Assembly: GCA_904063045.1 (NCBI GenBank)
Contig: CAJFCJ010000017.1
Span: 1 to 64,000, forward strand
Source: Dimorphilus gyrociliatus
Lineage: Eukaryota > Animalia > Annelida
Direction: 5' to 3'
DNA length: 64,000 bases
Positions 33,041 to 56,230 of this stretch are shown here, piece by piece (positions within the stretch are counted from its first letter, which is position 1; each line of letters opens with the position of its first letter). The position numbers were made by a program, and so were the translations under genes. The notes beneath the pieces were generated by a model. That model searched no databases and was not told the DNA's origin. It saw only the letters and a program-made list of their open reading frames with translations.

Positions 33041-34352
33041 TTAGTATGTTGTCTTAGGAGCTTCCGGATTTGATCCAGCTGGTTCGGCAGGCTTATTTAT
33101 AGTAACCATTGGCTGCCCCGTCCTCCATGTTTGAAATTTGAAAAATGTATCAACTGCAAATGTTCCTAGCGTGAAGAAGCTGAACGCCTATAGGTTGTTA
33201 AAATAAAAAAACCGACAATCAATATCATTCGATATTAAAATGAAACTATCTTACAGCAGCAGCTTTTCCGGCGTCTATTTTATATTTAGTACCCTGGGCA
33301 GCGGCAACTACGAAGGCGATAAAATAAAATAAGGTGTAGACGCCGTAGTAGACGAATTCCTGGTGAGAGAAATATTAGCAATTACAAATTGAATGCAGCA
33401 GATTTACTTTTCCTATTAATTAGACAACTCCGCTAACGCGTCTTTAATTCTTTCTAATTAATTTTCGTCTTCTATAGGCGTTTCCCCTTACTAACTAACT
33501 GGCTCGTTCACTCGCTCACGCCTCCCACTCTCTCCCTGCCTTCCTTTCTCTCTTTATCATTTTTACATTCTCTTCATTTGTCAAGGCCTAGTTCTATCAA
33601 TTATCTACACAGTATTAGAGAAATAGTATTGTTTATCGTATTTAATCTGAGCTTGCGCTGAGAATAAACAAAAGCTGTACAAGATCTATTCTCCTTTCTT
33701 ATATCGTAGGGAGGACGAATTAGAACGGAAGAGGAATAGGGGTAAAAAAAAAAAAAGAAAAAGAGCTTGGCAATGTGATAGATAGATAGATATAGAAGAA
33801 ATTGTTGAGGAAATTATGAGGGGAATTGATGCGGGAGAATAGCTAATGACTTTTTCAAGTAATAAATCATGTTGTACAGATGGTAATATTTTATATACAC
33901 GGCTTTTTAGGCTTTACGCATACAGGCAAAACGTAAGTTTTCCTCTTTTTATATAATATATCATCTATACGTATTGTATTGTAGAGTCGAGTATACTCAC
34001 TATCAACGGCCAAGGTCCAGGTAATTTGTTAATTAGCGACGTAACGTAAAAGATGAGTAGAACAGTGCAAATGATAAGAGCAGTCATTGACACAAATTGA
34101 ACCCATCCGCCTCCTTCCTTGACGAATGATGATTTAACACTAGCACATATGAATGTTATAAGACTGAGAACCTAGAAAAGAAAGGTTAAAAGGTTGATAA
34201 TTAATCGTTAAACAATAAATGAGATAAATACTTACTATTTGAGCGATTTTAAGCAAACCAGGTATACTCTTGATATAGTTTACATCAAACATAGAGCTAC
34301 TAGTGGCCGAAGCACCGGTATTGTACTGAGTTGGCATATTTCCTTCTGACAT
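33041..34352 (-). CDS. MARVEL-domain four-TM protein, plasmolipin/CMTM family
   Basis: Four exons: MSEGNMPTQY...FDVNYIKSIPGLLKIAQI|VLSLITFICAS...GGGWVQFVSMTA...LPGPWPLI|EFVYYGVYTLFYFIAFVVAAA...AAA|AFSFFTLGTFAVDTFFKFQTWR...KTTY*. The ORF-track start at 34370 is a GTG at a splice acceptor; the first ATG is at 34352. Confidence 0.93.
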
Positions 34353-34639: not shown

Positions 34640-36735
34640 GCACCAGTCGTATCAAAGACTTATTGATTTCGTACTAAAAGCTAAAACCTTATCGTTTTGA
34701 TAATAAAAAAAAAACGCATGATTATGAGGTTGAATATTTAATATAAGAGAATATCTATAAGGAATATAAAACCGTATATAAAACTAAATGTCTAAATGAC
34801 ACGATTTATTCCTCTTACTATTATTAATTTCCATTATTTCTTTGATGAAAGCGGCTACTTGGCGTGTTTGTTTGTTTGTGTGTAAAATACTTGTTGAAGA
34901 GTGTGACAGAATGAATGAAAGGATATAACAAGGAAGGAAAAGATATGGATAGAGAGAAGGATGTATATATATATATATATACCTTCAAACTACCGTTATT
35001 GCTCTATTAGAATGATTAGCTTTTTTCTGTATTTTAGAAATGGTCGTCATCAATATGAACGATTTCAATACTATAATTTTGTTAGTAATGGCGACGACCA
35101 TTTTCTAAAATAGTCGATTAATCGACAAGAAAAATAAATCAATGGTGTTTTTTCAACATTATATAATCAAAACACTTCTTTTTACGGTAGAGCGTCGTTC
35201 TATTGAAATCATTGCAATAAATATTAGAATGATACGTTAATCTAGTATTGAAAATATGAATAAATTGGAGGAACTAAGATGTCTTTTTATAAGAGCATAT
35301 TTATAGATTTAGTAGTATAATAACGAATCTATTTATACAGGTCTGTAAAACGCACAGCTCGTACGATTCTATTTACAATATTAGAATATTTAACGTATTT
35401 CGTTAGAGGAAAAATGTATCAGTTCTATTCAATACATGTCTAGAGAATGTTCTATTTCGTGCAACATACCTAGTCTACTGTTTTGCGCATACCAGTTTGT
35501 ATTTCGTTCGCTAATTTCTACTCTCTCCCTCTCTCGCTCTCACTCTTCGCATATAATCATTTATAATAAAATACTCTCCGTAAGCGTCTCCCAATCGTTC
35601 GTTAATTAATTATATCGTCTATTTAGATGTGAATCTTACCTGATCTATCGAATATTATTAAGAATTCTTCGAACAAAACTCTCCACCTAGCGCTCGTTAA
35701 GGCGGACAACGGCAAATGTTTTATGCGACTCAGTCTAGCTCAATTTTTACCACTTGACATGCGCAGAAATAACGTTGTATAGGCCTTCGCAAACGCCTCT
35801 TAAAACTATAGATGATACCTGGCAGCTTATCAATCCGTGTAATATCGATTTTAGCCGAATGATTCACCTGTTTTCTATAGACATGTGACTTGGAATCACC
35901 TATTCTTTACCGATAAAGACCTTACAGATTACGAAATGAATTCATAGACATTTTTTTTCTTATTCATTATCATTAAGATTCAATGATTCATGCTCACAGA
36001 GCTGTTTTACAAGTGAATGACTAAGTCTAGCCGAGATCCTAGGCTTGGTATTATATGAATATATGGATTTAATATATACTGGATAGCGAGAGAAAAAGGG
36101 GGACTATTAATCTCTAAATATTAGACATAATGCATAAGAGAGAAAGACAGAAAGAGAGGAAGAGAGAGAGAGAGAGAGAGAGAGTGAGTCTCATTTAAAG
36201 AATATTCTAAAATGGTAACAATATTAAGTTTCTATACACAAAATCTACAAATGTTAAGAGTATAGCTCAACGTTGTAAAGCGTTCTTTCTTTCTTTCAAA
36301 TCGTTTATTTTCACTCGAAGTGGGACAGGTCAGAAAATAATACATTAAATCAGTAGCCAACTAACTGTTCAATAATACTTATATACACGAATAGGAAGAG
36401 GGAATTGGACAGGGGAAATGAATCTTACATACAGACACGTCGATTGCAGAGTAACATGTAGAAAATGGGAGATATAAACGAATAAAATACATGTGTGAGT
36501 GTGCGAGTGCGTGTGTGTGTATACAGTATTTATTGTATGTATGCATATATGCCTGTGCGTACAGGCAGTTCTATATGTATTGTATCAGTTTGGTACATTC
36601 TACTCTACAGTCTGTGCCTTTTGTATGGCCAAAAATTTTTACAACTAATGGATTGTCTTTGCTGCAGTGCTGAGGAAATTTCTTAACTTTCATAATTAAA
36701 ATTAATTAAAACCTTAGTACGAATCGTACAATTCT

Positions 36736-36776
<41 letters not shown>

Positions 36777-37548
36777 CCTCTCTCCCTCTCTCTCTCTCGC
36801 TTCTTTCTCCCCACCATATAAAATTTACCCGAGTATATTGCATATTAGACTCTACATTATATCCATCTTTATAAATATATAGATACGAATAAAGCCAATT
36901 TCCTAGAAATGGGACCAATTTTTTATACTGGCAGAATAGAAGAATAACAAATGTAATGATATAGCAGCATACATGTTGGTTGCATACTATAAATTGTTTA
37001 TATTGTATATATTTATATTATAAGAATAGACTATACATGCAGTATAGTTGAACTATAGCAATGAACCAATGTATAGAGTAATGTTAAAGTTGCTGCCGGT
37101 GCCTTTCGTTTAAACGGGTTAAAGATCTTTTAGAAACTATAACAAGTCTCTTATCTAACAGTTTCAAATATCTTTTCACATCTTCCCCATTCCCATGGTC
37201 ATTATATTATACTTTTGATAAGGAAAGTTTGTCATTTTCTATAGAAATTAAGTGGAAAAGCTAGAAATAGTAAAGTGTATCGGTAATATAACAAAAACTA
37301 TATCGTTGTTACACTTGCTGCTCTACTTTCTATTGCTAATTGATCATCTCCAATGCTGGTGAAAAGAAACTAGAAATTGTAGGCCAAGCGGACAGAGAGA
37401 AGGGAATTCTTAGCTGAAAGTGACTAATAGATCAAAAGCATTTTGAAAAGCGATATTGATGACTAATTATGAAATGGTGATGAGTGAATTAAATTTAAAA
37501 AAGAACAAAAACAAAAGATTAAGACAAGAAGAAGAAAACTAGAGAATA

Positions 37549-39393
37549 ATGCTGATAAGGGGGAAGAGAAGGAGGGAAAACGTCGAGGTTATAAGATATA
37601 TAGTATACGTATATTCACATATAATAGAATTTTCATTTCTCAATTAGAACATCAAGGTTGGAGCAATCGATTTAAAGTCTGAAGTGAAGAAAGGTTTAAG
37701 GAAAGACTATACTATTGGTTTAGAGCAATACGACGGAAAAGGCGGTACTATCTATGTTGTTATTAGGAAAAAAAAGAAAATACTCTTCAAAGAAGATTTA
37801 TATCAAATTCAAATAATCGATTTAGAGAATTTAACAACTATTATTGCTAATAAGGTTAGGATTTAATTAATCGATTCATTGATTTATTGATCTCTATTAC
37901 TGATAAATCGATTTGACGTTAAATATCGTTGAAATAATTAATCGATGTATCTATTTTGACTATTTATTTCAATTTATAAATTTAGACTTCGGCGTTTGTC
38001 GTAAAATTTCCAGACTCGAATTGGGCATCTTCATTTTCATTTTGTAAGTTCTTTCTTGTCAATTTAAGTAGTATTGAATAATTCCAACTGCCAGAAGTAG
38101 TCAGAATCTAAAGTTTAGACCTATATCTATATATAAGGATTTAGGCCTATTCCTATATTTACACCAATGTAAATATCATTACGTAAAGCATAAGAAAGTG
38201 AAGGAAATCACGCAGAAAATATTCTCTTTAATAAAAAAATGCACATCTTTCTAGTCTACAAAGAAAAAGATGCCGACAAAGAGGAAGATATTGTTATACT
38301 TCCTTTCAAGTATGCTCCAGCTAGACCAAAAGCTCCCCAGCCACCTGTAGAAGTTGATCGTCAAAATTTACGTAAGCCTCAACTTCCACTTCCCTCTACT
38401 TCTTCTTCTCTCCCACCCCCTCCTCCTCCTCTTCTACAACAACAACAACAACAACAAAAACAAAAAAAACCACCACCACCACCACCACCACCGCCGCCGC
38501 CACCTCAGTCAAAGGTAAAGCCGATTCCTTTGGCTCCTCCAATTGGTTTAGAAAAACCGAAGACAATAAAAAAGGTAGAACGTAAAACTTCTGGCAAAAC
38601 GCAACAAGCAAAAAGAGGAGGAGAAGAGAAGTTGGAAGAGAAGGAAAGAAAGTGGAAATTCGATTTGAACGAGATAAGAAGTTTTAATAAAGAAAAGTTG
38701 AAAAAAGTTAAAGATGACGAAAAGAATAAAATGAAAAAATACGAAAATTATGCAGAGAGAGTCTTCGTAAATAATTTTAATAGTTTAATTCTTATATATA
38801 TCATAACAAAAACCAAATCAATAAAAAATTTAGCCAGGGATAAGTAGAGTTCTTGATAAAAGGCGAAGAGATGTGGCTGGTATGTTAGGTTCTTCTATTA
38901 CCATTCCTATATATATGATACTCTACTCTAATATTTCTTTTTAACTTACGAAAGGCGATACTCCGTCGCTCTCGGAAAAGGGGGAAGACGATTCGTGTAC
39001 GATTACCTATTACATTCAGTTATTTTTTATATTCGATAGCCAAAATGAAATGCATGTTTTACTTGTATTTTCAATTTAAAGGGTCGATAGATCAAGTTGG
39101 AAAGCGTAGGGTAAGCAGGTTAGAATAGGATACCTTTTAGGTTAAACAAAGGAAGAGAAGAAGAGACTGGTCAAATAATTGAATGATTGACGGCGATGCA
39201 CTTACTACTTTTTCCTTTGCAGAGCGGTAAAAGAGGCAGACGATTCCTTTCTAAAGGTAAAAAGGGATTAGTAAAACTTACAAACATGGGAAGATCGCTT
39301 AATCCATTCGCTTTAATCGACAATAAAAAGTACTCCTTTTCCAAGAGAGAATCAATAAGTAGGTCATCCATTCAAAATATCCAAAAAGAATAA
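37549..39393 (+). CDS. Highly divergent WASP-family-like protein (WH1/EVH1-like, poly-Pro, WH2, C-helix, acidic-Trp, basic tail)
   Basis: Exons 37549-37587, 37648-37854, 37986-38043, 38255-38766, 38834-38879, 38955-38996, 39082-39110 and 39223-39393 join in frame. WH1-like ILFKEDLY and VKFPDSNWASSFSFFYKEK; PPPPPPPPPP; WH2 DLNEIRSFNKEKLKKV; C-like GISRVLDKRRRDVA; A-like EKGEDDSW. The start exon is tentative. Confidence 0.75.
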
Positions 39394-39660
39394 AAATCCA
39401 AAAATTCCATAATTCAAAATTATTTTCAATTTATAATAAAATAATATATAGAATTTATTAATAAACTTCTTGTTAACGTTGTTTAACGTTGATTTACATT
39501 TAGGCCTATATCTTTCCTTTTTCCTCCTTTCTATTTGCGTTACGATAAAACGTGTTAGGCGGGAAAAAGGCTAGAAATTCTTTCTCTCGTTTAATATTAT
39601 TACTTATGTGCTGTGAAAAAATATGTTTAAGTATACAGTATTAAGTGTATAGGTGTGGGC

Positions 39661-39663
<3 letters not shown>

Positions 39664-39701
<38 letters not shown>

Positions 39702-39724
39702 AGAGAGAGAGAGAGAGAGAGAGA
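39664..39724. repeat. Compound (TG)n(GA)n microsatellite
   Basis: Directly visible, between the convergent WASP-like and LamG-1 genes. Confidence 0.95.
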
Positions 39725-39811
39725 AAGGCGAATGATTTATATGAATTAACATATGAACGATTAAATGCACCTACTGTTTTGTAAATCGATTAATGTACAC
39801 ATTTCTTAAAT

Positions 39812-40603
39812 TCAACTAGAAATCTTTCGTTTACCTTGAATTTGGCTTCGAATAAAAACTTGATGAATTTCATTTTCAATAAGAATTTCATCCCAGAACA
39901 TAAATTCGTCCAAAAATGAATTTGCGTACATTTTATCGTCCGATGAAGTTTGATTTAATCCACCAACGAAAAATTCATTAAAATTCGTCTCAACAACTAG
40001 ACGGCTATAGACATAAGAGTGGACTGGGGCAGTTAAACTACCATTTACGTATACTGTTATAGTATCGTTAGCCTTCCAAGTCCAACAGTAATGTCTCCAT
40101 TCGTTTTCTACCACATCCATAATAAATGTATTATAAACGTTGATCTTGTCGGCAATGTATATAATTAAATATTGTTTATCGTGATAAACGGCAATTCCGT
40201 AAGAAAGACCATTTAAAGCTCCATTACCGAAATAGTAATGCGTTCCATTCGATTTCTTATTAAGCCAAAAGCAAAATGTATGACCGTTTAAGCACAAGTT
40301 TGGAGAGAGGAAGCATTCATCTCTTCTCCTCGTTACTATCACGTAGTACGGGTTAGTCAGGTCAAGAGATTTATCTACAATGCTATTGGATGACGAAAAG
40401 AATATATCTTCGGATGTATTATGATTAGTATTAGTGTTATTATCATCGTTAGAATGAATACTAGAAACATTGATAAATCTACCAAATTTTAAATCATCGA
40501 AATCCCAATAATGCTGCCTGTTGAATGGATAAAGGCTGCCTAATCCCAGTGTTAAGGGGATTAGATGAAAGAATAAATGAGAAATTAATATCAGTTTCTT
40601 CAT
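39812..40603 (-). CDS. Secreted LamG-like (concanavalin A-like fold) protein 1; 3' exon uncertain
   Basis: ATG at 40603 with a signal peptide. Motifs HYWDFDD, RRDECFLSPNLCLNGHTFCFWL, WRHYCWTW, VYVNG and LDEFMFWD. A splice donor at 39834 implies at least one more short 3' exon. Confidence 0.88.
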   Translation of the reverse strand: MKKLILISHLFFHLIPLTLGLGSLYPFNRQHYWDFDDLKFGRFINVSSIHSNDDNNTNTNHNTSEDIFFSSSNSIVDKSLDLTNPYYVIVTRRRDECFLSPNLCLNGHTFCFWLNKKSNGTHYYFGNGALNGLSYGIAVYHDKQYLIIYIADKINVYNTFIMDVVENEWRHYCWTWKANDTITVYVNGSLTAPVHSYVYSRLVVETNFNEFFVGGLNQTSSDDKMYANSFLDEFMFWDEILIENEIHQVFIRSQIQGKRKISS

Positions 40604-43905: not shown

Positions 43906-44730
43906 TTATTGTTTGTGCGGAGGGTTATTAATGATGAATAGCATGACAGAAGATTGTATAAGCATACCTTGGTTGATGAATTCTAATGTTAGTTGAAAAG
44001 CATTTAGAACGAATTCTTTGCTCTTCTGCACTTCCCAGAACCAAAATTCGTCAAATAAGCTACTTGCGTAGTAATGATTGTAAATAGATGGATGTGAATA
44101 TTCGCAGTTTGCTCCAAAACGTAAGGGAAACGTTTTAGAGGTTGATACATTTTTCGACTGTTTAGAGGTGGATTTCGTTGCAGAAGTTCCATTTATGAAC
44201 AATTCTATAGGACTAGAAGTATTCCATGTCCAACAGTAGTGATTCCAAAATTTATTAAAATCAATAGAATGATAGAGAAAATAGTAAAATGAACCATCGG
44301 AAAGTTTTATTACTAAATCACCGTTGAAATGATAAAAACTAACACCTTTACTGTCTTCAATATTCCCTCCATTGGTGAAATAATAATGCCAACCACTCGT
44401 ATTTTGAAGGGTTTTCACCCACAAACAATAAGTATGACCATTAACGCATAAATCTGGTGATAGTAGGCATTCGTCTCGTCTGGTGGTCAAATCTATATAG
44501 TAATTTGTTGAAAAGTTGAGAGATTTTCCCGAAACAATATCCGAACTAGACAATTGAATTTCGTTGGAGGCGTCCTCTCCAGAAATTGCAGGAGTTTCAC
44601 CAATTCCATTAAATTCTCCTTCATCAAAACTCCAATAATAATATCTTGCATTGTCTCCTTTGGTAAATGCAGTCATAAAACAATAGAAAAGGAGCAATCT
44701 AGTGTAAAATTTCCACAATTTCCTCTTCAT
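43906..44730 (-). CDS. Secreted LamG-like protein 3; 3' exons uncertain
   Basis: ATG at 44730 with a signal peptide. Motifs YYWSFDE, RRDECLLSPDLCVNGHTYCLWV, WNHYCWTW, LFING and FDEFWFWE. Donor at 43967; candidate downstream exons lie at about 43645-43150. Confidence 0.88.
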   Translation of the reverse strand: MKRKLWKFYTRLLLFYCFMTAFTKGDNARYYYWSFDEGEFNGIGETPAISGEDASNEIQLSSSDIVSGKSLNFSTNYYIDLTTRRDECLLSPDLCVNGHTYCLWVKTLQNTSGWHYYFTNGGNIEDSKGVSFYHFNGDLVIKLSDGSFYYFLYHSIDFNKFWNHYCWTWNTSSPIELFINGTSATKSTSKQSKNVSTSKTFPLRFGANCEYSHPSIYNHYYASSLFDEFWFWEVQKSKEFVLNAFQLTLEFINQGMLIQSSVMLFIINNPPHKQ

Positions 44731-47075: not shown

Positions 47076-49096
47076 ATGTCAACAAAGGATCAAGATCATA
47101 GCACAAAGCTTATAAAAGTTTGAATTTGTCGATTGACGTAATCAATTATTTTCTTTTTTCAATTGTGTTCTCTCTAAATAGTTTAAAGAAGCTCTTGGAG
47201 AAAGTTTAATAAAGGATCACGACGACGCTTATCTAATTAAATGGCTATACGGTAAGGAAACAACAATAAGGACGAAGAAGAGACAAATTGAACATCTTAT
47301 TAAGAGTTTACTTTTTCCATTAGCGAGGAAGTTTGTTATTGAAGATGCGGCAGAGATGTACAAGAAGGTAATGAATTCCAATAGCCTACATTTACAAGGG
47401 ATTTAGTAAAAAACCAAAGTACCTTGAATTGAATTTTTCATTCAAACAACAGACGGATAGATATCGATAAAAAAAAACAATACTAAATTGAATAAGTTTA
47501 ACGCTTAATGTGTTTTTTGTTTTATTATTGTTGCTCTTCATTAGAGTATGATTTGGCGGCGAACTACCGGAGCTGATACTCTAATTAAAACATACCAAAA
47601 ACCGGAAATACTAGAGAAATACTTTCCAGTTTCCTTTGTTGGCATAGATAAGCAGGGTAATCCGATTCTTTTTAACCATAGCGGTATAACGGATTTTAGG
47701 GGTAAACAAATGAACATGTTTAATTGATTGGTTGATTGATTTGCTTAAAAACTGTTGCAGGACTGTTCGATTCAGTTACAAAAGTTGAATTTATAAAATA
47801 TATGACTTATCTAGCCGAACTCGGTAGAAAGTTATGCAATGAACAAAGTAAACAAATGGAAAAGTTTATTGGACAAATTTCTGTTGTAATTAACGGAGAA
47901 GGTTTCTCCAGACACAACATGACAAAGAAACGTAAAGATAACTAAAAACAGTATATTAATTATGTATTTTCAATTGTATTTCTATTCCATTAGTAATTGA
48001 TTATATGACTGAATTCTTGAAAGTTTTTGAAGCTAACTATCCAGAATATCTATATAAGTTTTATATATTAAACCGTAAGTAAACAATTGATGAAATTCAC
48101 TCCTCAATCAATCAATTATCGTTAACAGCTCCAAAAATATTCAAATTACTATATAATATAGTAAAACCATTTTTAAAGAAAGCTACAAGAGATAAAGTAA
48201 TCTTTTTAGGAAGTAAGTAAGGGAGAGAGAGAGAGAGAGAGAAAGCTTCCTTAACATAAGGACATCCAGTATATAATGTCTTTCAACAGATGATTACAAG
48301 GCTAAGCTCGCTATTGATTTTCATATAGAAAATGCTCTTGATACGTTTTGTATCGGAGAAGGATCTTCCTCTAATAAAAAGGTAAAGTTATCTTTGCTAA
48401 AACACCTCCTTACTACTCTATTTTATACTGTTGATTGAATTAATAAAAAGAGAATTGAATACAGAGCAAATCCGATTACATCGTTCCCGATGAATATAAA
48501 ATGAATAATGAGAATATTTCCGATGTAAACTCTGAAATTAAAATAGGAAGATTCGGCGAAGTGGAAGTTGATTTTCTTGTTGAAAAATCTAATTCGATTG
48601 TCAGGTAATATCTAAATACAGTAAAACGATTAGCTGACAAAAGATCTTGACGAATTCTTAACATCTATACAAACTCTCTCTCTCTCTCTTCTAGATATTC
48701 ATTTCAAACTAATGATAAAATCAAGTTCGGAGTTTATAAAAAGACCGATAATAGTCAAGTTAAATATGATAAAATGAAAAAGATCGAAGCTTTACACAGC
48801 GTGGAAAGTCACAAATATCCCGAAGACGGGTGTTTTGAATGCGAAGAGGAAGGAATATGTATGATACTAATTGTCCAATAATTGCATTGTTCTATAGACT
48901 ATAAATAATATCTATGTTATCTACAGATACCATCGTTTGGAGTAATAAAACGTGTTTAATAGGAAAGAATCGCATAAATTATACATTGGACGTTTTGCTT
49001 CCTAATTGCGACACTGATAGTGGACAGAATATCATTAGCAAGCCAGCTAAGTGTATAGCCATTAGAGGCGCTCATTCTGCTAAACTTAAACAATGA
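47076..49096 (+). CDS. SEC14L: SEC14-like CRAL-TRIO + GOLD lipid-transfer protein (SEC14L2/3/4-like)
   Basis: Eleven exons join in frame: MSTKDQ...|FKEALG...DDAYLIKWLY|ARKF...|SMIWRR...PEILEKYFP...GIDKQGNPI...|...|FEANYPEYLYKFYILN|PPKIF..LYNIVKPFLKKATRDKVIFLG|...GOLD RYSFQT.DKIKFGV...EDG.FEC.EEGI|YTIVWSN...*. Confidence 0.93.
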
Positions 49097-50115: not shown

Positions 50116-53100
50116 TCAACAGTTTGTCAACGTAGAAATATCTTCATCAGGTATTGGTAAATTTTCACTCTTGTATAGTTGAAACACCGACGCTTTATCG
50201 TATTCAATCGTTAATAGTTTATTGGACGTTAAACACTCGCCGACAATCAAATCCACTGAGTAATACAAGCATCCTTGATTTATGCAAAAGTTTGTACAAT
50301 TTTCAATTAAGCCTATCGTTGAATTAGAGGCAAACAAATGGAATGACGTGACGTTCGTTAGTAATAATTTCATATTTTTCGCTTTAAGTATAAAATATTC
50401 TGTTCAAGTGAGAGAATAGGAGAGTTAAATGTATAAATCTAGTAAGAAGAGAACAAACAGAAATGAACCTGATCTTGGAGCTACAAAACCAGGGAGTTTT
50501 GATCCAAGAAATCCAAAGCAAATGTTTATATTTGGTGATGATTGAAAATGTATAGAAAATCCTTTTATTAGTTTAAACTCTTTGCAGGGAAATTCAATTA
50601 GAGAGCCATTTCTTAACGGACCAACTTTATTCGGGTCATAGTTGGTGCAGGGGGCTTCATTTCCACCTATGGAAGAGTTTGAAATGTTTATTTCGAATGG
50701 TATTTGGAATTCTCCATGGAATTGCATAGATATTCCGTAAGAGAAGAACGATAGATCGTCTTCTGTTATATCGATAAATAATTGAGTATCGATAACTTGT
50801 AAACAACCATTCAGCGTATTTTTAGAGATATTCGAACTATCTCTAAACTTTTTAGCAGGTAGCGAATAAGAATTATCTGCAAAAGAAGGGACAATGAGAC
50901 AAGAGAACCGAATAAATTAAATGGATGAATAAAAGAATGAGCATTTTAACAAACTATAGTAGTCTTTCGTTAAGTTAGTGACAGTTGCGTTTGATCCAAA
51001 AATTAATACTTCGCACAGAACGAAACTCTCTCTATTCATATTTGTAATAATAAGATAATTGTTATGATGAACTTTTTGTAGGCAGTCTATTTCGTATGTA
51101 ACGCAACTTTGAAAGCCTATCTTTAAATAGCCGCAGATAGTTTTCTTTTCATATGGCCAATCGGCATCGTTAGGTAAAGTTCTTGTTAACGATATTTCGT
51201 ATTCGTACGATGCACCTATGAAACGCAAAATACAAGTTAAAAGAGTAAGATTCCCACTCTTTCATCTTCTCATCTACTTGAATAGGCTTTGGTTTACCTG
51301 ATAAACTTTTTGAATCTCCAGGAACGAGTACTATCGATTGGATTGTTGACCAGTCCACTCTAACTGCCAGCCAAGGATGATTCGTACCGGAAATGTAGCT
51401 ACACGAATGGCTCTGAGTTGTTGGAGGATTTTCGTAAATATTAACTGAATTTCCATCAAACGCTTTGGCGGGAGATCCTCGCCCTACCATCGCCTCGGGA
51501 GTCGACGAATAAGAGGCGATAGTTAAAAGTTGATGTAGATGCGTAGAATAAACTTGATTGATAAGAAGAGACGAAGAAGAAGAAGAAGAAGAATAAAAGA
51601 GAATTATGAATAAAAATAGTAAAAAGAGAAAGAAGTAAAAGTCATTTGAAACCTTCATTTATTAATTGTCCATAAACTTCCATTTCAGCTATTTGTAATT
51701 GTTTGTTGTAGACGGGTTGTATCAGAGTGAAATAACGTCCAGTAACGTTAGGTTGGCATGCAAGGAATTTTGCTTCTCCCTTTTCGAATCCTTGAGGATT
51801 TTCGTAAATATGACACAAGACATATGGAAAATATAGGGCTTCGCTTGCGTTCATATTTCTGGGAGGCGGTGTATCTCCAACAAACAGAATGTTCTTCTGA
51901 TGGAAATCTTTTGAATAAATGTCTTAAAGAAGGAAAAATTTTCTATAAATAGATTGTTTGTCCCATTATATAATGTTAGTAAAAATTCAATTACTATCGA
52001 ATCTGGTTATAATGATAGCTCCATAGATTAAATACCTATTCACTAGATCTATAGTAAGGTAAGGAAATCTTTTGCCCCATGTACTCGGTATTGCTAAAGT
52101 AGTTCTTTCGTTAAGATAGGAACCGTCGACCATATAGCTAGAATGGCCGTAGATTCCGCTTGTCGTAGATAATGCCGGTCCATAGGAGAAGGTGGGCTTA
52201 AATTTTGCCAAATTTTCTAAATCTACAAAATGAATAGATTACGATTCGTAGAGACGGTTTTTGTAAAAATTAAATAATTAGAATTACCTCTCTTCCTTAC
52301 AAACTCGCCAAATATTTTCATTTCGCAAACGCTTACGGTTTGTACATGATTATAGACAATTACATATTGTGTAGCATCCTTAATAGAATCGCATTTAACC
52401 CTATTCCAACTTCCGAGTACAACGTTAACTACCTGACACAGTGTTGTATTATCGAACTTCCATTCTCCTATAGGACTAGTTTTGATAAATCCAATGTCTA
52501 AGAATATACGATAAAAAATTTATATAGAATTATTATCGACTTGACTGATGATATAAAACTAGAAAGAAGAAAAAAGTTAACTTAGGGTCGTTGAAGTTGA
52601 GTACAAATCTATAGTATAGACTTGGTAATAGGCTAACAATCCTACGATTATCCAGGACATATTTTTTGTAGGATGTATATCGGAAATAAGACACGATGCT
52701 ATGTTATTGTCAATAGCCGATGGCGTTGGAGAGTCAACATTTGACGAGTAGATTGGCGCCGAATAAGCCAAATTATCTGAATGAAATTCAAAAAAAAAGA
52801 GATTTCAATAGGGAAAAGAAGACAAGCTAAAATATTGATAATTGAAACCTGTGTAAACTTCAATTTCGCAGATTATAGTCTCAGAAAGTGTTGTTTGTAG
52901 GTTAATAATCTCAATCAATTTAGCTAATCTATTAATCTGTTGCGAACACGTAACGTATTCGATAGCGGTCGTTAGATTTTTCGTATCGTATGTAGTGTCT
53001 TTGCACAGTAGTTTAGAGGAATCGTTAAAAGTTCTTAACAAATTTATTCTATAGGAGACATTTCCGTCTTGAAGAGAATTCAATATAGCAATTGAATGAA

Positions 53101-53487
53101 TTGGCATTTCAAAGTCGAGATCAATTACAATTTGAAAGTTTAATCCGTTAAATTTTGAACAGGATCCGGACTCTGAGAAAAGAGATAAACTCCCATCAGT
53201 TAAGTGATTTTCATTGAAATATTTATCATTTATCGAAGAATTCGATGTGACTTTCTTATAAAGAGCAACATTTAATAAACTTCTCGACGTTGTTATAGAA
53301 CAAATTGTCGAATTAGCCAAGTCATCGTTGCAAAACGTTGTGTCATCAGACGAAACGCTCTTTATCCAATTCGCAACTAGGACAATCAAATAGTATAAAT
53401 ATCATACATTCGAATAGAAAGAAGATAGAGTCAATAACTACCAATAAAGAGGAATAAAGTTGAAAACACTTGAAAACTCTTCAGCAT
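50116..53487 (-). CDS. Secreted multi-domain F-type-lectin-like (FTP/F5-8C fold, 5 domains) + C-terminal PAN/Apple protein, paralog C
   Basis: ATG at 53487 (MLKSFQVFSTLFLFI|VANW). Five repeats, the first four starting with NVA/NLA-type segments and containing xDG/xDN and CE(I/M/V)x(V/I)(Y/F)G motifs, the fifth more degenerate. PAN-like NCTNFCINQGCLYYSVD...GECL. Stop at 50116. Confidence 0.87.
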
Positions 53488-53604
53488 TTCTTGTTGAATT
53501 TCCTTTAATAGAGAGTTTTGTTTCAAAGTAAAGAAAAAGGTTAAACTCTATTATTCCCTATCGGTAGATCTAAGCAGACGAACAAACAGTACTATGCCAA
53601 ATTT

Positions 53605-53645
<41 letters not shown>

Positions 53646-53863
53646 TATACTTGTATGTATATACTATAGAGTTTGATTTGTTCGTTAACGGTTGGTACTA
53701 GAAATGAGAATGCGAGCAACTACTAATACTGTTGAATAATTTATCTGTAGGAGTGGAAAAAAATTTATAGAGTTTATAATCATCGATCTGATTGGCGTTT
53801 TATTGTCGTTAAATAGACATCAACTTTTACTTTAACACTGTTTAATCGTTCATATTCATTGGT

Positions 53864-56230
53864 TCAACTTTTGTTAACACATTTTAAATGATATTTAAAA
53901 GAGCGTATAGAATATAATTTGAAAGAGCTGCAGACTTTGCTATAGAAAGTTTCACTCGAAGATGACATTCTACATACTTTAGTTAGAGTATTAACAGAGA
54001 AATAAAGGCACGAATCGTTATTATAGCAGGCTCGAGAGCATTGTTTGATAAGAGTCAACGTAGATCCTTCAAGTTTAATATCATTTCCATGACTAAGATA
54101 TTGTTTCTGATGCAGCATTTTAGTATGAGCTAAGTAATTTTAAATAAGTGAATTTATTAATTATATATACTATTCTTCTTAATAGAATCTTTTACCATTT
54201 TGTCCTTGAAATGTAACTTGACAAGAGTCAATAGTAACATTTCTCTTCAATTTCACAATTACCGTATTTGCGAAAGTAAGCTTGCGGCAAAAGAATCTAT
54301 GTTTCTCTCCACCTTTAATCGTTCCTTGCTTATCAATGTCGTGTGCTGAGCATAACTTTAGCTTATTCTCTTTGAGGTGATTATCGTTCAAAGCAGTATA
54401 TACTTCGAAATTCTCTTGAATATCTTCATTAGCACTAAACGCAATACTCAAAATGTAGAATAAGTCAAAATATTGTTTTGATATTCTAAAAACGAAAGTA
54501 TCGGCTGTTAAGTTAGTACACGAACTTTTAAACCCTATAGGTATATCTTTTATCGGTTGTAAAGTTGAACCAGTCAGCACACCTGAAAGAGCAAAGACAA
54601 TTTGTCTATAAAATACTAATGAAAAGAAATACACTAGACAATATATATATATAAGATACGCTTACCTATTTGATGATACGAATTAAAAGTGCTATCGGAG
54701 GTTGCTACAACGATAATTTCGCACAGAACAATATCTACATGATTCAAGTTGTAAATTGTCATTCTGTAAGATGGTATGTGCCTTTGACAGTTTATCTCGT
54801 AAAACATTGATTCTGTTATAGTTAAGTTGCCAATACTACAAACTGATATAGTCGTGGATGATGTTCCCAAATGTTCGGGGTAGTAGACGATGGTCGAAAC
54901 AAGACGATACTCGTAGATTAGTGGCTCTAAAATGATAGAATAAAAGTAATAGAACAAAAAAATGGCTTGTTTGTTTGTACCTTTATTGTCTTTATTCGAC
55001 CCAGGAACGAGAACAACTTTCGAAATATTTCTATAAGCGACGTACATTGATATATATGAACCGATACTCGGATTAACTTCAGCAATAAGACAACACGAAG
55101 GCCTAGTAACGTTTTGGTAGTTTGTTACTAGGCTACCATCCGATAGAGTTTTTGACCTGCCCGTAGAAAGTAAATTTGAAGTTTTCGCTGATATAAGAAA
55201 GGATGCGATGTGAGGGTGTGTGTGATAGAGACTGTGATCTATAAAGAATAAAGAGAAAACTGAATAGAACATTGAAATCAGTATTAAATATTAATAACAA
55301 TATGAATTGGATTTTGTTCCGTATACTTCTACTTCGGCTAATTGTAAATATTTTCCATATTCCATTTGCATAATAAGGAAATATCTTCCTTTGTAAACTT
55401 TATCGCATTTGAAATATTTCGATTCTCCGCCAATAAAACCAGTTTCCTTTTCGTAATGGAAGCATAAGGCGTTTTCGTCGCTGACTAGAACATCTTCAGT
55501 ACTTATTGTTGTATTCGGAAACGTTTTTCTACTGAAAAGCGTTAAGTTTGTATTGAACTTGGCGGAGGCAGAATCTTTTGTTCAATTCATAATTGGTATT
55601 CTTAGAAAATATATAAGAAACTGTATGATTGTTTAATTGATTCTATACTCACTATCCATGTTTGCAATGATTAATGCAGCTTGTATAGCATATAACTTTG
55701 TCAAGTAAACCCCCCAATATGGATTTTTAACCGTATTAGGTATAGCCAGATATGATAGACCCGTTTTATAATTTAGGTCGTTGGCCAAACTGGCAGCGGA
55801 AACATGAGTGGAGAGTTCAACAGCTCCTTCGTATTGCCAAGCTGGTCTCTCTTGCGCTAAATTCGGAAAAGCTGTTTGTTTTGTTTGTCAAAAAAAAAAA
55901 CAAAAAAGCCTCAATTAAATATCCTATACATCAATGAGAAAGTAAAATGAATAATGTTTGCTAATTACAATAATCTTTCAAGTAAACTCCTAAGATATTC
56001 AATTCGCAGATTTTCAAAGTATTTGCAGATCTAAAAGTAACATAATTAACTTCAATTTGTTTCCATTCATTGCAAATACTTCTGTGCCAAACGTTGTTTA
56101 TTGGCATAATAGCTTTAGCACAAAAGTTTGGTAAACTTTTATCCCAATAGTCTACCGGATGTCCTGTACCAGTTATAATGTCTAAAATAATAATTTTTCG
56201 TTGTATCAGCAATAAAAGAGACTTATTTAG

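Follow-up and report, generated by a model that had tools for sequence, protein, structure and literature searches.

Metazoan WASPs are described as switch proteins that are kept closed by their GBD. Here we describe a gene at positions 37549–39393 on the forward strand of a 64,000-nucleotide (nt) stretch of DNA from the annelid Dimorphilus gyrociliatus (positions 1 to 64,000 of contig CAJFCJ010000017.1, assembly GCA_904063045.1; hereafter the window), whose predicted product shares with WASP and N-WASP a WH1-like domain, a proline-rich region, a WH2 motif, a C helix, and an acidic patch with a Trp, in the same order. On balance, the gene probably encodes a compact, fast-evolving, lineage-restricted WASP derivative without a GBD, which would work as a nucleation-promoting factor or as a close functional variant of one. 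The likeness to WASP/N-WASP extends to WH1 fragments that lie at the human spacing, and to one intron that coincides exactly, and one that nearly coincides, with an intron of human WAS. The locus differs from WASP/N-WASP in that it has no basic-CRIB/GBD module and reaches about 60–70% of the usual length, its WH2 is of the beta-thymosin type with a 6-residue linker, its acidic patch is weak, its Trp is followed by 14 or 65 more residues in two of three gene models, and its largest N-terminal exon is not recognized by the Pfam WH1 profile.

There is precedent for WH1-containing WASP relatives that lost the GBD or were shortened: in the part of PMC3298513 available to us, yeast Las17-type WASPs are reported to have lost the CRIB and WAID, fish S-WASP to be shortened, and species-specific WASP duplicates to be common. 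The GBD-less forms named in that part are fungal, unlike the present locus, and fish S-WASP is without the basic, central, and acidic domains, whereas the locus keeps the central and acidic ones; the same part of PMC3298513 names no metazoan WASP that lacks a GBD but keeps the central and acidic domains. A species-restricted WASP-family protein also has precedent in WHIMP, which, according to the portion of PMC7112243 at hand, is limited to some mammals and was recognized only recently; WHIMP is, however, named for its WAVE homology, not for a WH1 domain, and is unrelated in sequence to the locus as far as tested.

Two further groups of actin-binding proteins resemble parts of the predicted protein. 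The beta-thymosins and Ciboulot (PF01290) share with its WH2 the helix, the Phe linker, the LKK[TV] motif, and the EKN extension, and it is only to beta-thymosins that this WH2 aligns in the PDB. In contrast to these proteins, the locus has the motif as a single copy in a multidomain protein, ahead of a C helix and an acidic-Trp patch, and the motif scores below the Pfam cut-off for beta-thymosins. The Ena/VASP proteins have an N-terminal EVH1/WH1-class domain, poly-Pro, and a thymosin-like G-actin-binding motif, as the locus is predicted to have, but the best-matching fragments of the locus are WASP-specific (LLWEQELY type), and its WH2 is followed by a C pattern and an acidic-Trp patch.

Motif order and candidate WASP ancestry

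Joining eight exons gives one open frame of 367 amino acids (aa) at 37549–39393 on the forward strand. Its exons and motifs are as follows, with exon/intron borders marked by a slash.

37549–37587, forward strand: exon 1, aa 1–13, basic, with the start codon, which is that of the public gene call; donor gag/GTTATAAG
37648–37854, forward strand: exon 2, aa 14–82, the beta-rich bulk of the N-terminal domain, containing ILFKEDLY
37986–38043, forward strand: exon 3, aa 83–102, where the N-terminal domain has its last strand and its C-terminal helix begins, with a VKF-D-A-F motif
38255–38766, forward strand: exon 4, aa 102–272, with an acidic linker, poly-Pro/poly-Gln, a charged region, the thymosin-type WH2, and the first two residues of the C motif
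38413–38505, forward strand: proline-rich core, aa 155–185, with P6, Q7, and P12 runs, located by regular expression and direct reading
38656–38748, forward strand: beta-thymosin-type WH2, aa 236–266, with the core LNEIRSFNKEKLKKV at aa 239–253 and then an EKN-containing extension
38761–38875, forward strand: C (central/connector)-like motif, aa 271–286, interrupted by the 67-nt intron 4
38834–38879, forward strand: exon 5, aa 273–288; donor ctg/GTATGTTA, with an alternative 9 nt downstream, tag/GTTCTTCT
38955–38996, forward strand: exon 6, the acidic patch, with the Trp codon split T/GG across intron 6; patch and Trp together span 38955–39083, aa 288–302
39082–39110, forward strand: exon 7, aa 302–311; donor agg/GTAAGCAG
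39223–39393, forward strand: exon 8, aa 312–367; acceptor TTTTTCCTTTGCAG/, the best of the gene

The features listed in the original prediction, which had been made from the letters of the window, all lie where it placed them, and the exon joining that it proposed yields a single GT-AG-spliced open frame. Judged by its sequence, the WH2 is statistically supported and of the beta-thymosin rather than the WASP type. The sole match in Pfam searches of exons 2, 4, and 8 was to the Thymosin profile PF01290 at this motif (E = 0.0017; 18.5 bits, below the cut-off of 24.8 bits; profile positions 4–25 of 39), and a phmmer search of the PDB returned beta-thymosins only, with thymosin beta-9 the best (E = 0.0014), together with thymosin beta-4 constructs and a Ciboulot chimera. 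The region aligned in the PDB matches extends from the helix over the linker with its Phe and the LKK motif into the EKN extension; the thymosin-like WH2 that had been predicted is present. The published WASP-family WH2 pattern is fitted in part, by LKKV (aa 250–253), by Ile-Arg, and by the second hydrophobic (PMC3298513).

The predicted C-like helix is likewise borne out. In the published C domain pattern (PMC3298513), large hydrophobics occupy positions i, i+4, and i+8, a doublet or triplet of R/K comes next, and one more hydrophobic closes the motif; V271, I275, L279, RRR282–284, and V286 match it in full, and the C fragment of WASP finds its best match in the whole protein at this motif (P = 0.008). 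A reading of the C motif as a second WH2 was rejected on the failure of the WH2 pattern at positions 4–5. As had also been predicted, a weakly acidic patch ending in Trp is present: it closes with GEDDSW, in which DDSW (aa 299–302, 13 residues past the C motif) is the sole match to [DE][DE]x(0,1)W in the protein. Shuffling the tail past the WH2 gives the order C then A in 0.02% of cases, and shuffling the whole protein gives the order V-C-A in a fraction of 5e-6; these figures are upper bounds on significance, the patterns having been written after the sequence was seen. The motifs and their order are beyond chance. Before this VCA-like part, aa 107–235 contain 32 Pro, which gives the proline-rich region expected of the WASP family at that place, and the proline-rich core is a candidate profilin/SH3 binding region.

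For the N-terminal domain, of about 100 aa, we infer a WH1 fold from short blocks of similarity to human WASP. Human WASP fragments were slid along the whole 367-aa protein in ungapped comparisons scored with BLOSUM62, and the scores were set against shuffles. LLWEQELY matches best at ILFKEDLY in exon 2 (aa 58, P = 0.008), and the WASP WH1 fragment LNFADEDEAQAFRALVQEK matches best at aa 88 in exon 3 (P = 0.005); with the C fragment, all three WASP fragments of the original prediction (P = 0.008, 0.005, and 0.008) thus have their best ungapped match exactly where it had aligned them. The two WH1 fragments are 30 residues apart, compared with 31 in human WASP, and when both are placed at the human spacing (±2) they score 51, compared with 14.8 ± 4.8 in 100,000 shuffles (P = 1e-5, z = 7.5); since the fragments had been picked in the original prediction, the shuffle P values are optimistic, perhaps by two orders of magnitude.

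The human WASP residue identities used for comparing intron positions are in part assumed. The numbering so obtained agrees with T111, F117, F137, K446, and P460 of the mutation table of PMC9304939, from which we also took the exon borders of WAS (c.132/133, c.273/274, c.360/361, c.1338/1339, and c.1453/1454). In the ungapped fragment alignment, K82 is followed by a phase-0 intron whose position is exactly that of human WAS intron 3, itself of phase 0 and placed after D120; we put the probability of such an agreement by chance at about 1–2%. Just past the C helix, codon 288 is interrupted by a phase-1 intron, and WAS intron 11, which is likewise of phase 1 and interrupts codon 485, is two codons away. 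The phase-0 intron 1 precedes the ILFKEDLY block by 44 residues, and WAS intron 1 precedes LLWEQELY by 50 residues, positions that are compatible but loop-dependent. The significance of the fragment matches and the coincidences of introns with human WAS together point to WASP ancestry.

As a WASP derivative, the locus would descend from a WASP-type gene, would keep most of the WASP layout, and would have lost the basic-CRIB/GBD autoinhibition module. In a protein of 309–367 aa, according to 3′ splice choice, the poly-Pro tract may first gather profilin-actin or SH3 partners, the thymosin-type WH2 may then hold an actin monomer, and the C helix and DDSW patch may finally contact the Arp2/3 complex and promote branched nucleation. 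Since the GBD is absent, there would be no GBD-C clamp for Cdc42/Rac to release, and control would come from the partners of the N-terminal domain or from the very basic C-terminal tail that follows the Trp in the 367-aa model. Binding to actin, activation of Arp2/3, and the mode of control are each properties that we infer from the predicted protein.

Gene model and alternative 3′ ends

All seven introns are GT-AG, with lengths of 60, 131, 211, 67, 75, 85, and 112 nt from the first (phase 0) to the last. The short ones agree with the published median intron of the species, 66 nt, in a genome that was annotated with Augustus, Exonerate, PASA, and EvidenceModeler (PMC7854359). The window is AT-rich (about 32% GC), and within the gene the GC fraction is 0.29–0.57 in exons and 0.13–0.38 in introns, most introns being far AT-richer than the exons. 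No stop occurs across the eight joined exons, and exon 4 sits inside a 202-codon open frame. Introns 1, 2, and 6 have weak donors, that of exon 6 being GTACGA.

For a codon-usage score, 30 other long open frames in the window served as the training set; they themselves average +0.19 bits per codon in frame and −0.44 off frame. The proposed frame is the top-scoring one for each of exons 2–8, at values between +0.10 and +0.47 bits per codon; exon 1, with 13 codons, is too short for this test. Exon 2 scores +0.26 in frame versus −0.69 and −0.38 off frame, exon 4 scores +0.25 and +0.20 outside its low-complexity part, and exon 6 scores +0.47. Exon 7, which is short and gives little power, scores +0.16 in the Trp frame versus −0.62 in the alternative-donor frame, and exon 8 scores +0.18 versus −0.36 and −0.91 off frame. 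All frames of the three tested introns have negative scores. The gene model is coherent.

In the public assembly the gene is annotated at 37549–39128 (forward strand) with a 319-aa product that has no Pfam match, in keeping with the forecast that standard annotation would call it hypothetical. This length is reproduced exactly when the exon 5 donor 9 nt downstream (38889) is used and intron 7 is left unspliced: the downstream donor adds three residues, without which 319 aa are not obtained, and the unspliced intron 7 leads to a stop at 39126–39128, the annotated end. The two exon 5 donors, GTATGT (38880) and GTTCTT (38889), are 9 nt apart, and the annotated length fits the weaker one. A further model arises at exon 6, where a donor 2 nt upstream (38995, GTGTAC, versus 38997, GTACGA) shifts the frame to an end in SSWKA-stop at 309 aa. 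Three 3′ ends are thus possible, giving 367, 319, or 309 aa, and the length of about 380 aa first proposed needs to be revised to one of these.

The spliced 367-aa model is the best supported of the three, because exon 8 has a positive codon score in frame (+0.18) and the best acceptor, the exon 7 donor is near consensus (GTAAGC), and the stop at 39391–39393 overlaps an AATAAA at 39389–39394. Exon 8 comprises 57 codons that are open in the frame fixed by the upstream splices; it has no Pfam match.

Contrary evidence and rival explanations

Besides the optimistic P values of the fragment matches, the features set out in this section, some of which suit a rival explanation, weigh against the reading of the locus as a WASP derivative. 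The WH2 helix starts D-L-N-E-I, with Asp first and Asn third as in beta-thymosins, and not with the two hydrophobics of the WASP family, and its linker has 6 residues versus 4–5 in the WASP-family pattern. A Pro-Gly (aa 273–274) lies inside the C motif, and the acidic patch is weak, with 5 acidic and 1 basic among the 13 residues before the Trp. This Trp is non-terminal in two of the three models, at 65 aa (spliced) or 14 aa (annotated) from the C-terminus, and in the 309-aa model it is a different Trp that lies 2 residues from the stop. In the spliced model, aa 303–311 and exon 8 form a strongly basic 65-aa tail after the Trp, with an isoelectric point (pI) of 11.6.

An actin-monomer adaptor without Arp2/3 activation, the main rival, which we regard as rather unlikely though well worth weighing, would account for several of these features. 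Such a protein would use a PH-like targeting domain, poly-Pro, and a full beta-thymosin domain to deliver G-actin or to sequester it; it would function like Ciboulot, WIP, or Ena/VASP, feeding barbed ends with profilin, and its CA-like stretch would be what is left of a degenerated CA, or else due to chance. The one domain with statistical support is of the thymosin type and has the EKN extension typical of beta-thymosins, the weak acidic patch runs into a basic tail, the Trp is internal in the best-supported model, and the GBD is absent, all of which suit an adaptor. Against it, the published C pattern is matched at every position, V271 lies 18 residues past LKKV, and the Trp lies 15 residues past the last C hydrophobic. 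Such spacings between WH2, C, and Trp resemble the layout of WASP-family VCAs. The rarity of the C-then-A order in shuffles also speaks against an adaptor, as does Pfam, which gives neither a VASP tetramerisation match nor a second WH2.

A second set of contrary observations concerns the GBD and the N-terminal domain. The CRIB consensus occurs nowhere in the 367-aa model, exon 4 has no PBD/GBD-type Pfam match, and the first proline run starts only about 50 residues past the N-terminal domain, which leaves no room for a GBD. The basic-CRIB/GBD module, the defining feature of metazoan WASP/N-WASP, is missing, and the locus should therefore be labelled WASP-derived or WASP-like, not a standard member. 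The original prediction of a WASP-like factor holds in that the order of WH1-like domain, poly-Pro, WH2, C, and acidic-Trp is beyond chance, but it has to be qualified by the absent GBD, the lack of a WH1 match in profile and fold tests of the largest N-terminal exon, the beta-thymosin type of the WH2, and the internal Trp of the best model. The profile and fold tests of the N-terminal domain covered exon 2 alone, about two thirds of the domain, and there they gave no match in Pfam (including WH1, PF00568), none by phmmer in the PDB, and no relevant one in the ESM Atlas. An AlphaFold2 model of exon 2 alone is a five-strand meander (mean pLDDT 63.5) that found no match in Foldseek or VIA-align, as expected for two thirds of a domain.

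The locus might instead be no extra paralog but the WASP ortholog of the species, which would have lost the GBD and degenerated heavily. An ortholog would likewise be expected to show the matches to WASP-specific WH1 fragments and the introns at WAS-like positions. We nevertheless consider this very unlikely: PMC7854359 describes a conservative genome that evolves slowly and has kept many ancestral introns, and a lone WASP that had diverged beyond recognition by Pfam would therefore be odd in it. A tblastn search of the window with the spliced protein returned only the locus itself, and thus no paralog in the window.

Further contrary observations come from expression data and from searches for relatives. 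No RNA sequencing run on record contains the whole locus. When exon 4 alone was compared with sequencing runs, the only matches were runs of the species guessed to be DNA and metatranscriptomes with 4–6% of its words, the latter being taken to be low-complexity noise; three runs with contig sets of 26–42 Mb, smaller than the genome, contain exon 4 fully and are possibly RNA. Exon 4, half of which is low-complexity sequence that limits such a search, has no relatives at E ≤ 0.001 among 1.84 billion protein representatives, and the 202-aa open frame has none in a word-indexed protein library. Neither protein search returned the annotated 319-aa product itself, although its self-match would score 1e-97 in a local control and the collection behind those searches does contain a different protein from this contig. 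The annotated product hence seems to be absent from the searched libraries, which weakens any argument from a lack of relatives. In the ESM Atlas the best named cluster for exon 4 is a rotifer WH2 family (0.75), which is a lead only.

These negative results might be taken to indicate a non-functional or mis-modelled locus, either a decaying duplicate or an artefact of gene prediction around a low-complexity open frame. The missing RNA run, the missing relatives, the annotated product that neither search returned despite the presence of a neighbouring protein in the collection, and the weak donors of introns 1, 2, and 6 would all fit such a locus. It appears highly improbable, however, given that seven of the eight exons, three of them of only 29–46 nt, score best in the frame that splicing requires whereas the three tested introns are negative in every frame, that the eight exons stay in frame without a stop, that an AATAAA overlaps the stop, and that the three possible RNA runs contain exon 4 in full.

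An Ena/VASP protein was rejected for the lack of a tetramerisation region and for matching fragments that are WASP-specific, and a WIP/verprolin protein for the wrong domain order. Pfam gave no VASP_tetra or other match in exon 8, and none besides Thymosin in exon 4; no dedicated coiled-coil predictor was run.

Genomic surroundings and meaning

The surroundings of the gene comprise the following features.

33906–34352, reverse strand: a MARVEL-domain gene, cut by the end of the examined locus
About 36160–36190, 36720–36800, and 39657–39725: compound dinucleotide microsatellites, (GT)n(GA)n and GA/CT runs, which flank the gene
About 3 kb 5′ of the start codon: no long open frame, a large gap for a compact genome
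39812–42359, reverse strand: a convergent neighbour with a 577-aa product that has no Pfam match on record; its last exon (39815–40603) matches Laminin_G_3 (E = 2e-13) and Pentaxin (E = 3.5e-5)
43906–44730, reverse strand: a single-exon 274-aa Laminin_G_3 gene, sole member and representative of its 90% cluster
47076–49096, forward strand: a 404-aa CRAL_TRIO gene
50425–51490, reverse strand: a 301-aa product with no Pfam match
51642–54730, reverse strand: a 2064-aa product with faint F5/8 type C matches

The WASP derivative that we favour could conceivably belong to a small lineage-specific Dimorphilus "mini-WASP" family with a rearranged logic, a proposal that is speculative and quite unlikely as it stands. 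In such a family the GBD clamp would be gone, a thymosin-type WH2 would feed the CA part, and the polybasic tail, placed right after the acidic-Trp patch, would either inhibit that acidic patch from within the protein or sense membranes or phosphoinositides, with the 3′ splice choice switching between a tail-less form, which ends close to a Trp, and a tailed, masked form.

The practical importance of the locus is modest at present. It is a real annotated gene that profile libraries leave blank, and motif order and intron positions can still place it. If the locus is indeed a GBD-less animal WASP derivative, it would raise the question of how branched-actin nucleation is controlled without a Rho-GTPase clamp, and whether an Arp2/3 activator can work with a thymosin WH2 of the sequestering type.

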